The translations under genes and the position numbers were made by a program. A model generated the notes under the pieces. It ran no database searches and had not been told where the DNA came from. It saw nothing but the letters and a program-made list of their open reading frames with translations. From sequence record PV037725.1: a stretch of 64,000 bases of DNA. One strand, 5' to 3'. This document shows positions 14,153-16,340 of this stretch, one piece after another. The stretch's first letter is position 1; the number at the start of each line of letters is the position of its first letter.

Positions 14153-14749
14153 TTAACCTACAAACTTACGTGCATCTTTTTCGTTGTCATAGAAAGTACA
14201 GCTATAGTCGGACCATAGATTAGAAGAAGGATCATGTTTCCAACCTTTAGCTTTGTCACCCAACTGTTCTTTTAGGTTTGCTACAGCCTCTGAGAAACTA
14301 TAACCAACACCCTTACCCAGCAATCGTGCTTTCTCATGGTTCCCGTTGTCTTGCCAGCCTTCCATCCATACTTCAAACTCCCGTAGTTTCAATACGGTGG
14401 TTCGCTGTTCTTGCAGGACTTGTATGACTTGGTCAAAATCAGTGTAACCCAAAGAAGTTAGAGTGCGAATCAAAGCGCGTTGGGCTTCACCGTCTTTAAG
14501 GAGTTCCACTAGAGGTTCGTCAACAATCATCAGACCACCTAGAGCAATGATGTTGGCTAACTGCTGGACCTTCATCCATTCGCCTTTAGGATCGATTACA
14601 GGCTCTCCTGTAGGTGGTGGAGCATGTCGGTCAAGGATGATACCAGGTGGTTTGATGGTGTAGCGGGTCAAACGTTTAAATACGTTAGTATGGTCCAAGT
14701 TAACTTCGGTAGTAAAGTCTTGGTCCATGGGTGTAAAAGTCTGTGTCAT
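14153..14749 (-). CDS. hypothetical protein
   Basis: 198 aa; C-terminal WMEG...F.EA...YDNEKDAR module. Confidence 0.7.
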   Translation of the reverse strand: MTQTFTPMDQDFTTEVNLDHTNVFKRLTRYTIKPPGIILDRHAPPPTGEPVIDPKGEWMKVQQLANIIALGGLMIVDEPLVELLKDGEAQRALIRTLTSLGYTDFDQVIQVLQEQRTTVLKLREFEVWMEGWQDNGNHEKARLLGKGVGYSFSEAVANLKEQLGDKAKGWKHDPSSNLWSDYSCTFYDNEKDARKFVG

Positions 14750-14952
14750 ACTAAAAGGCCCTTTGGAATTATTTCTATAGTGGTGTCAGTTGCATCAATC
14801 CAAACGTCTTTACTGTTATGGATATCGGCGAAGCAAACCTTACCACAGCTACATTGATACAGGTTATAGTTGTAATCGGGTTCGATCTGCTGGTTGCGAT
14901 CGTCGCATCCAACATAGTCCATGGTTTCGCCACATCTACAAATTTTACTCAT
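14746..14952 (-). CDS. small zinc-ribbon-like protein
   Basis: CRC..C and CSC..C clusters; ATGA overlap. Confidence 0.6.
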   Translation of the reverse strand: MSKICRCGETMDYVGCDDRNQQIEPDYNYNLYQCSCGKVCFADIHNSKDVWIDATDTTIEIIPKGLLV

Positions 14953-15140
14953 GGGTTTCTGATCCCGTAATCAATTACACGATTGAGTTGTTCCTGGGTT
15001 GGAATACGTTGGCGATGACGTTCAGCGCATTCTTCATCGAATTTCTTTATGCGTAATCGCTGAGCTTCGATTTGTTCAGGTGTCATGGGTGGAGGTGTCC
15101 AACCACTACGACTTAACTCAATTAGTTTTTTAATAGTCAT
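14949..15140 (-). CDS. small paralogue array member 6
   Basis: MTIKKLIE...PTQEQLNRVI; ATGA coupling. Confidence 0.7.
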   Translation of the reverse strand: MTIKKLIELSRSGWTPPPMTPEQIEAQRLRIKKFDEECAERHRQRIPTQEQLNRVIDYGIRNP

Positions 15141-15310
15141 AGGCTGATCACCTTATTCAATAACTCTTCAGTGACGATCGAGTCATTGAATTCTTTAGAC
15201 AAACGTTTGTTGAGTTCTTGCATATTGTGTCGACGAATCTCTTCGAATGCAGCTTGTTCTTCTGGGGTATATTTGCTACGGGCTTGTTCGATCAGTTGCT
15301 CTAGTGTCAT
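15137..15310 (-). CDS. small paralogue array member 5 (57 aa, not in ORF track)
   Basis: MTLEQLIEQARSKYTPEEQ...VTEELLNKVISL; ATGA coupling. Confidence 0.7.
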   Translation of the reverse strand: MTLEQLIEQARSKYTPEEQAAFEEIRRHNMQELNKRLSKEFNDSIVTEELLNKVISL

Positions 15311-15471
15311 AGATCAATCACTCGATTTAACATCTCAGGTGTTACACGTTGGCGTTCAGCTTGCCGTTTTAATATTAAGGTCATCAGTCTAGTCCGAGCA
15401 CGTGTCTTACGTAGGAACTCTTCATGCGAACTATAACCCATAACTTTCCAACAGGTGGGTTCTCTAGTCAT
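15307..15471 (-). CDS. small paralogue array member 4 (54 aa, not in ORF track)
   Basis: MTREPTCWK...VTPEMLNRVIDL; ATGA coupling. Confidence 0.65.
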   Translation of the reverse strand: MTREPTCWKVMGYSSHEEFLRKTRARTRLMTLILKRQAERQRVTPEMLNRVIDL

Positions 15472-15647
15472 AGACTACAACTCCTATTTAATAGCTCATT
15501 TGAGGGTTGCTTCAATTGAGCTTTGCGTTCAAGCTCTTTATCAAACACATGTTGTCGTTCACGGACTGAGTCGATTCGAGCTTTTACTTCTGGGTCATTC
15601 ATATCAACTGACGTATCGGCAAGTTTGATGAGCGCGCTTAATGTCAT
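15468..15647 (-). CDS. small paralogue array member 3
   Basis: MTLSALIK...PSNELLNRSCSL; ATGA coupling. Confidence 0.7.
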   Translation of the reverse strand: MTLSALIKLADTSVDMNDPEVKARIDSVRERQHVFDKELERKAQLKQPSNELLNRSCSL

Positions 15648-15826
15648 AGTGTACACCTTCGATTAAGTAGTTCTTCATTTGGCACCAACCCACGTTCCAG
15701 TTCGACATAACGTCGATCCAGCTCGTCTAAACGAACCTGTGTTTCACGTAGCCGTTCCATACGTGCTGCGCGTGTCTCTTTTGAACGACGGTATTCGGTA
15801 AGATCCTGTATTGCCTTTAGGGTCAT
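15644..15826 (-). CDS. small paralogue array member 2
   Basis: MTLKAIQD...PNEELLNRRCTL; ATGA coupling. Confidence 0.7.
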   Translation of the reverse strand: MTLKAIQDLTEYRRSKETRAARMERLRETQVRLDELDRRYVELERGLVPNEELLNRRCTL

Positions 15827-15993
15827 AGAGTGCACCTCTTATTCAATACTTCTTCGGTCATTCGTTGGGCTACTTGCTGACGCAGTAATCTTAGGTTTAA
15901 AGCCTGCATGCGTTCACGGGCAATGTCATTACGCTTAACTGGATCGGGAGATACACGGTTCATAATTCGCTCAAGTAAGTTTTCTGATAACAT
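15823..15993 (-). CDS. small paralogue array member 1 (56 aa, not in ORF track)
   Basis: GAGG RBS; MLSENLLE...MTEEVLNKRCTL. Confidence 0.7.
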   Translation of the reverse strand: MLSENLLERIMNRVSPDPVKRNDIARERMQALNLRLLRQQVAQRMTEEVLNKRCTL

Positions 15994-16000
15994 TTTAACC

Positions 16001-16261
16001 TCAGTGCATCATCATGCTACCTACACAGTGACAATTGCATAGACAGATATCGTGGATATTACCATCTGGGTCGACGGCTTTCTCTGGTGCAGGAAATTCA
16101 CCCGACTGTTTAAATCGGCGCTTAGCCCAGTCCGAAGTAGAGTCTTGAATCTTAACTAACTTAGTGCCCGGCGGATAATGCTTCTCCAGGAACCCCTCAT
16201 GGAGTTTGCCGTCTTCAGTCATATACGGAGCACTACTATTATAGTTACAACATGCGATCAT
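16001..16261 (-). CDS. Cys-rich hypothetical protein
   Basis: GAGGG RBS; N-terminal CC and C-terminal CLCNCHC. Confidence 0.6.
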   Translation of the reverse strand: MIACCNYNSSAPYMTEDGKLHEGFLEKHYPPGTKLVKIQDSTSDWAKRRFKQSGEFPAPEKAVDPDGNIHDICLCNCHCVGSMMMH

Positions 16262-16312
16262 GATTAAACCCTCTGTTAGATATAGTAGTTGCATTGTAGT
16301 AAATCTTAGACG

Positions 16313-16340
16313 GCATAAAGAAACCCCGAAGGGTTTCTAA
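16313..16340 (-). terminator. terminator of the tRNA-Ser/ncRNA C transcript
   Basis: Minus strand AGAAACCC-TTCG-GGGTTTCT-TTATG. Confidence 0.75.

Follow-up and report, generated by a model that had tools for sequence, protein, structure and literature searches.

Six translationally coupled paralogues of a phage-restricted small-protein family form a tandem array in Pseudomonas phage Viktualia

The genome of Pseudomonas phage Viktualia (PV037725.1; 322,655 bp; host P. syringae), whose closest named relatives are the jumbo phages 201phi2-1, D6, Psa21 and RVTF4, carries on one strand a tandem array of six very small genes. We analysed a 64,000-nucleotide stretch of this record, hereafter the window, in which a coordinate equals the PV037725.1 coordinate minus 62,000 and positions 14700-16300 are 100% identical to the record. 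The array consists of six minus-strand open reading frames (ORFs) that lie head to tail at 14949-15993 and encode proteins of 54 to 63 amino acids (aa), with net charges from -3.4 to +5.6; all are annotated in GenBank as hypothetical protein (CDS0158-0163). We refer to them as paralogues A to F:

15823..15993, minus strand: paralogue A, 56 aa, isoelectric point (pI) 10.7, tail TEEVLNKRCTL; first in every array that has an A type
15644..15826, minus strand: paralogue B, 60 aa, pI 9.1, tail NEELLNRRCTL; counterpart of 201phi2-1 gp449
15468..15647, minus strand: paralogue C, 59 aa, pI 6.6, tail SNELLNRSCSL
15307..15471, minus strand: paralogue D, 54 aa, pI 10.8, with a distinct N-terminus, EPTCWKVMGY; counterpart of 201phi2-1 gp450
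15137..15310, minus strand: paralogue E, 57 aa, pI 5.1, tail TEELLNKVISL; the most common type
14949..15140, minus strand: paralogue F, 63 aa, pI 9.5, with an extra YGIRNP after the tail motif; the terminal type

All five internal junctions from A to F read CTATGA, in which the TGA stop codon overlaps the ATG of the next gene, and the coupling runs past F through a CCATGA overlap into a 68-aa ORF and then through a GTATGA overlap into a 198-aa ORF. A preliminary description of the stretch had proposed six ORFs chained by identical CTATGA overlaps, and we verified both the ORF coordinates and all five junctions; its remark that three of the ORFs had been missed by an ORF track fits a 60-aa cutoff, A, D and E being shorter. 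A single long frameshifted or polyprotein gene is ruled out by the presence of an ATG in each unit and of a separate Shine-Dalgarno sequence in most, and by the existence of single-copy relatives. The six ORFs are a polycistronic, translationally coupled run of old paralogues from one phage-restricted family, PHROG 20797, and we regard this genetic description, comprising the array, the family, the selection acting on it and the turnover of its cassettes, as near certain.

Each of the six proteins matches phrog_20797, a 54-position profile of unknown function, over its full length, with E-values from 5.3e-4 (D) to 2.9e-12 (B). Among 5,006 stop-to-stop ORFs of at least 30 aa from the whole genome, a hidden Markov model (HMM) of the family recovered exactly these six ORFs (E-values 6e-14 to 2e-28; next best 3.3), and an HMM of the 13-residue tail recovered only the same six (1e-5 to 1e-8; next best 0.81); that the six share this tail by chance is excluded. 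The whole-genome ORF scan found the tail motif on no larger protein of Viktualia, and profile scans of the six proteins and their homologues found no Pfam or NCBIfam family. A word-based search returned 60 homologues of 54 to 75 aa, and a profile search run exhaustively over 1.84 billion representative proteins returned 95 clusters, nearly all of them 43 to 67 aa long, a few of which have N-terminal extensions and in none of which the module lies inside a larger protein. A 519-aa repeat protein among the profile matches was a false positive. In three longer metagenome gene calls (P0062, 143 aa; P0066, 111 aa; P0069, 89 aa) the family module is the C-terminal part, and the start codon of these was probably called too far upstream, a true N-terminal fusion being the less probable reading.

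The motif (V/P)-T-x-E-L-L-N-(K/R)-x-x-x-(L/I) occurs in all six paralogues and in 171 of 176 distinct homologues, with a hydrophobic end straight after it in 156 of the 176 and the F-type extension in another 15. Among the 176 sequences M1, L6, R28, T46, E48, L50, N51, K/R52 and L56 carry the most information, with additional conservation at I7, R26, D/N33, L36, V/P45 and I/C54, and an N-terminal helix of the form M-(T/L)-(L/I/S)-x-x-(L/I)-(I/L/Q) opens five of the six paralogues, the exception being D. The preliminary description had called the six ORFs paralogues with a shared and conserved C-terminal motif, and it was right on both counts, given the matches of all six to the PHROG profile and the family HMM and the presence of the motif in nearly all homologues; loss of the motif in homologues, which would have counted against that description, was thus not observed. 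Its picture of a conserved tail on variable bodies was only half right: the tail is conserved, but so are L6, I7, R26, R28, D/N33 and L36 in the bodies, and the N-termini have diverged less than it stated, only D departing from the helix pattern common to the other five. Since homology spans the whole protein, the tail does not sit on unrelated bodies.

Selection on the array could be gauged against L006, a 323-kb metagenome contig about 87% identical to Viktualia in the flanks. The ratio of nonsynonymous to synonymous substitution rates (dN/dS) was 0.009 for A, 0.086 for C, 0.14 for E and 0.055 for F, and protein A is identical in the two despite 20 nucleotide differences in 171 nt. These comparisons indicate that the array ORFs are real coding genes and that every tested copy is under strong purifying selection. 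A 161-nt contig from a rhizosphere metatranscriptome (run X19) is identical to 15594-15754, although DNA carry-over is possible for this contig.

The protein motif overlaps a translation signal. The Shine-Dalgarno sequence of the next gene is embedded in the part of the motif that encodes K/R-V/R-I/C, with AAGAGGTG, GAAGGTG, TAGGAG and AAGGTGA as examples, so that part of the motif is dual-coded. Predicted pairing of these sites to the 16S 3′ end is strongest before B, at -9.4 kcal/mol, and weakest before E, at -3.1 kcal/mol, and the earlier suggestion that the six proteins are made in equal amounts is not borne out by this range. The arrangement raises the question of whether the motif serves chiefly at the level of DNA or RNA, as a ribosome-binding or restart site for the next gene, a late promoter of the TATG kind within the array or a site of recombination. 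In favour of this are the placing of the Shine-Dalgarno sites for B, C, D and F within the K/R-V/R codons and the occurrence in each junction of TATG, the phiKZ late promoter consensus, of which the G is the start site (PMC4666361). A transcript starting at that G would, however, lack the AUG of the next gene, and an internal TATG promoter at the junctions was rejected on this ground. The Leu, Lys and Arg codons of the motif vary synonymously between copies while the residues stay constant, and the motif is kept where no family gene follows or no overlap exists, as in the F type, 201phi2-1 gp449 (CTG TGA), RVTF4 member 2 (CTC TAA) and gp101 of phage pf16; it is therefore the protein that is conserved. 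With dN/dS far below 1 as a further point against it, the idea that the motif is chiefly a nucleic-acid signal is already largely refuted, and we consider it very improbable.

Arrays of two to six copies occupy the same locus among transfer RNA (tRNA) genes in nine related genomes or contigs, with two copies in 201phi2-1, five in D6, four each in Psa21, RVTF4 and L006, five each in the contigs L012 and L013, and four plus one apart in L011; L015, a 35-kb fragment nearly identical to 201phi2-1, has one copy within the fragment. Most array junctions in these relatives read NTATGA, and the order of types is kept: arrays with an A type begin with it, and arrays with an F type end with it. A maximum-likelihood tree places each Viktualia paralogue with its counterparts from other phages, with clade supports of 99/95 for A, 99/94 for D and 94/88 for F and less resolved groupings for B, C and E. 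The duplications thus predate these phages, and the six genes are not recent copies of one another.

The array itself changes by in-register gain and loss of whole genes. That of L006 runs A-C-E-F and lacks B and D, the gaps falling exactly on the junctions; because B and D have counterparts in 201phi2-1, their loss in L006 is the likelier direction. A wastewater contig (run X16) has 96 other bases in place of 15546-15822, a segment that takes in nearly all of B and the 5′ part of C, and a contig of run X1 has all six paralogues at about 98% identity. The 3′ ends of the genes are near-identical, as in the AGGTG.AC.CTATGAC common to A and B, and together with the NTATGA junctions offer homology for in-register recombination. 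Some members look like chimeras of subtypes: P0019 joins an E-type N-terminal half to an F-type tail (…YGIRYP), and member 2 of Psa21 (L004) and member 4 of L013 join a B-type N-terminal half (…EYRRS…) to an E-type tail. Such members suggest that recombination occurs within genes as well as at junctions.

All named carriers of the family are Pseudomonas phages. The array of 201phi2-1 lies in the same position beside tRNA genes and has two copies to Viktualia's six, both in PHROG 20797, gp449 being the counterpart of B at 58% identity and gp450 that of D. The T4-like 158-kb phage pf16 (Chakrabartyvirus) has gp101 (L009 3489-3674; E-value 1.6e-22), a full-length E-type member with the same tail, which differs from the Viktualia genes in being a single copy, with no array and no overlap junction, in a phage without a phage nucleus. 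Because this T4-like phage carries a copy, the family is neither bound to the phage nucleus nor confined to nucleus-forming jumbo phages. The pf16 gene is opposite in orientation to its RNase H and DNA helicase neighbours, like a moron gene. Another single copy (L007 4001-4174) lies among many small unknown genes on JGI contig Ga0609862_0000018, a metagenome contig of 809,879 bp whose DNA matches none of the phage records; this copy is flanked on its two sides by short proteins, of 205 and 174 aa, in which GmrSD_N/DUF262 is the sole domain. No relative was found in 185,579 bacterial and archaeal genomes, a weak negative since the pattern scan used E-type peptide patterns only.

Structure prediction gives the family a simple outline. 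An AlphaFold2 model of E, built on the family alignment, has helices at 3-11, 16-44 and 48-56 (mean predicted local distance difference test score (pLDDT) 86.7; predicted template modelling score 0.51), and a model of D, built on its own sub-alignment, has helices at 7-10, 16-40 and 45-48 (pLDDT 91.3), so that the two share the same layout despite the different N-terminus of D. The central helix is predicted with the most confidence (94-97) and the C-terminal end with the least (70-75). The proteins are thus predicted to be stand-alone units of about 57 aa, consisting of a short helix, a long Arg-rich helix and a short helix, the last of which carries the motif; in both models the tail forms the third helix of one compact short-long-short unit, and it may therefore simply be part of the fold. 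A sequence-profile search of the PDB gave a best E-value of 0.39, Foldseek comparison of both models with the PDB gave no match, the ESM Atlas gave no usable match, and BFVD returned only 201phi2-1 gp449 itself. An exhaustive VIA-align search yielded a flat plateau at Z 4.3-5.0 of coiled coils, including dimeric SARAH domains, and 5d23.

The shape of the models raises the possibility that the proteins assemble with themselves or with one another, the exposed middle of the long helix pairing in an antiparallel, SARAH-like manner into homo- or hetero-oligomers, whose joint supply the translational coupling would secure. A 29-residue helix with two 9-residue flanks cannot bury its middle as a monomer, the charges of the six are mixed, five overlaps chain the genes tightly, and among the best compact matches by structure are the dimeric SARAH domains 4oh8 and 4hkd (MST1/2, RASSF5), which have a short and then a long helix and align at Z 4.4-4.5 and root mean square deviations of 1.9-2.5 over 45-50 residues. 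These scores, however, fall within an uninformative plateau common to dozens of coiled coils, at sequence identities of 8-18%, and SARAH is a eukaryotic domain of larger proteins without the third-helix motif; the likeness is in shape only, and we treat it as a lead for dimerisation and not as evidence. Moreover, array membership varies in close relatives (A-C-E-F versus A-F) and single copies occur, which makes an obligate hetero-complex of fixed composition unlikely. Self-assembly of the paralogues seems to us quite unlikely; homodimers would be compatible with the explanation that we favour below.

The Arg-rich central helix could instead bind RNA or DNA, for example as part of RNA chaperones or regulators acting with the neighbouring cluster of tRNAs and structured RNA. 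Four of the six proteins are basic (pI 9.1-10.8), R26 and R28 are conserved within an Arg/Lys-rich helix, the arrays lie between tRNA genes in all of the jumbo relatives, and 5d23 is found in the structural-match plateau. However, E is acidic and C is neutral, the pf16 copy lies far from tRNA genes, between RNase H and helicase, and neither Foldseek nor VIA-align recovered a known RNA- or DNA-binding fold. Weak matches to STPR (PF21107), an Arg-rich DNA-binding repeat, appeared in 4 of 62 members (best E-value 2.9e-4); they lie under the Pfam gathering score and are absent from the six window proteins, and we dismissed membership in STPR as noise. On balance we consider nucleic-acid binding rather unlikely.

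The genes and signals around the array bear on its expression and on possible partners:

14746..14952, minus strand: 68-aa Cys-rich ORF, acidic, with two CxC pairs (CxC...CxC), joined to F by the CCATGA overlap and to the gene after it by GTATGA; not a family member
14153..14749, minus strand: 198-aa ORF, phrog_26055, function unknown; counterpart of 201phi2-1 gp448; entered through the GTATGA overlap
16001..16261, minus strand: 86-aa Cys/His-rich ORF, which opens the operon 7 nt upstream of A
16314..16338, minus strand: terminator-like hairpin (16319-16338) followed directly by TATG (16314-16317), ending an upstream tRNA-Ser/RNA unit; read directly

The 68-aa ORF (dN/dS 0.086 against L006) has no Pfam or PHROG match, may be zinc-ribbon-like to judge by its cysteines, and is precisely missing from the X16 metagenome variant. 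The 86-aa ORF has six Cys residues and a C-terminal C.C.C.C...H pattern, shows a dN/dS of 0.021 against L006, and has a homologue (31% identity) upstream of the Psa21 array. The hairpin, the TATG and about 25 nt are identical in L006, a conservation exceeding that of the coding flanks (~87% identity). The block at 16314-16338 is likely a combined terminator and promoter, and the promoter of the operon probably lies there or just downstream.

Downstream of the array the genes differ by clade: Viktualia and 201phi2-1 have gp448/gp447-like genes, and D6, Psa21 and RVTF4, beside whose arrays no counterpart of the 198-aa ORF was found, have one to three paralogues of about 240 aa. Because the downstream genes are not conserved between clades, the array has no fixed partner gene. 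The ~240-aa paralogues (L003 158-2346, L004 1606-2313 and L005 1485-2941; D6, Psa21 and RVTF4) share 23-56% identity with one another and are unrelated to the 198-aa gene of Viktualia, forming a second variable set of paralogues at the same locus.

The preliminary description had suggested a diversified set of inhibitors, antitoxin mimics or adaptors. For a role as antitoxin mimics or components of toxin-antitoxin systems, size, helicity and tight gene coupling are the only points in favour. PHROG and Pfam scans showed no toxin-like neighbour, however, and the downstream genes change from clade to clade; searches of Pfam, NCBIfam and PADLOC gave no match to an antitoxin family, and the E-type pattern scan did not find the family in bacterial genomes. 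We therefore regard this possibility as extremely improbable. A weak match to the PADLOC 'Cyclase' model PDLC00779, seen in 10 of 62 homologues (best E-value 0.0018) and absent from the six window proteins, was set aside as noise; in one re-scanned member it scored 11.6 bits and fell on the N-terminal helix.

We propose that the paralogues are small non-enzymatic binding modules belonging to the accessory gene set of Pseudomonas phages. A conserved face, made up of R26, R28, D33 and L36 of the central helix together with the C-terminal helix, would contact one common partner, probably a host factor given that the family is found in a nucleus-forming jumbo phage as well as in a T4-like one, and the specificity of each paralogue would come from its variable N-terminal helix, loop and net charge. 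As a whole, the explanation of the locus as a coupled array of old paralogues from a phage-restricted three-helix family serving as accessory binding modules is one on which we are evenly balanced; the binding-module function taken by itself we put forward tentatively, as a real possibility that is more apt to fail than to hold.

Several points weigh against this proposal. Its functional part is wholly inferred, and the polar residues conserved at R28, E48 and N51 may serve only to stabilise the fold through contacts within the molecule. An arms-race gene would not be expected to be as strongly conserved as A, D and F are, and RNA support for the array amounts to the single 161-nt metatranscriptome contig. 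The timing of expression may also be wrong for early host takeover. The phiKZ-type early promoter core TATATTAC occurs at six plus-strand sites in the window (11976, 23226, 25186, 28796, 33561 and 51705), each just upstream of a plus-strand ORF, which makes it a usable marker of early operons in Viktualia; the window scan found none before the array operon. The operon adjoins paralogues of virion proteins and tRNA genes, and middle or late expression might, though weakly, be inferred to suit it better. The promoter classes of 201phi2-1 parallel those of phiKZ, and its tRNA-Leu is under a middle promoter (PMC11512511).

A bolder version of the binding-module proposal is that the array is a recombination-shuffled library of adaptors, in which the invariant C-terminal helix docks all paralogues on one receptor and the variable N-terminal helix and surface charge of each bring in a different client or block a different site. 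The receptor would be a host protease, chaperone or polymerase, or a phage hub, and in-register NTATGA cassettes would let phages swap adaptors quickly. If this were true, the shuffling would have left its traces in the chimeras P0019, Psa21 member 2 and L013 member 4. We think such a library improbable.

Among known systems, the array invites comparison with phage loci of small, diversified accessory or counter-defence genes such as anti-CRISPR loci, which likewise comprise small non-enzymatic proteins encoded in tandem, variable in presence among close strains and spread among unrelated phages of one host genus. The members of such loci are usually mutually unrelated and often stand beside a helix-turn-helix (HTH) regulator gene, whereas all members of the Viktualia array are paralogues of one fold, and PHROG and Pfam scans of the window proteins showed no HTH regulator as a neighbour.

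A search of the accessible literature found no paper on the family or on 201phi2-1 gp449 and gp450, and these two genes are not mentioned in the text of the 201phi2-1 transcriptome paper (PMC11512511). The family itself is not new, since PHROGs already contains it as a cluster and its genes are annotated as hypothetical; what the analysis adds is the anatomy of the array, the age of the subfamilies, the turnover of cassettes, the dual coding of motif and ribosome-binding site, the predicted fold and the pf16 copy. On present evidence this is one more family of unknown function, already in PHROGs, and not a new kind of system; finding a common docking partner would raise its interest. Tiny genes that are unannotated or labelled hypothetical abound in jumbo phages, and the array provides a clean case in which comparison shows six such genes, each with some 57 codons, to be genuine, under selection and modular. 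With its simple predicted fold, near-invariant end motif, presence/absence variants and single copy in a T4-like phage, the family is a tractable starting point in the search for a new phage-host contact in Pseudomonas.

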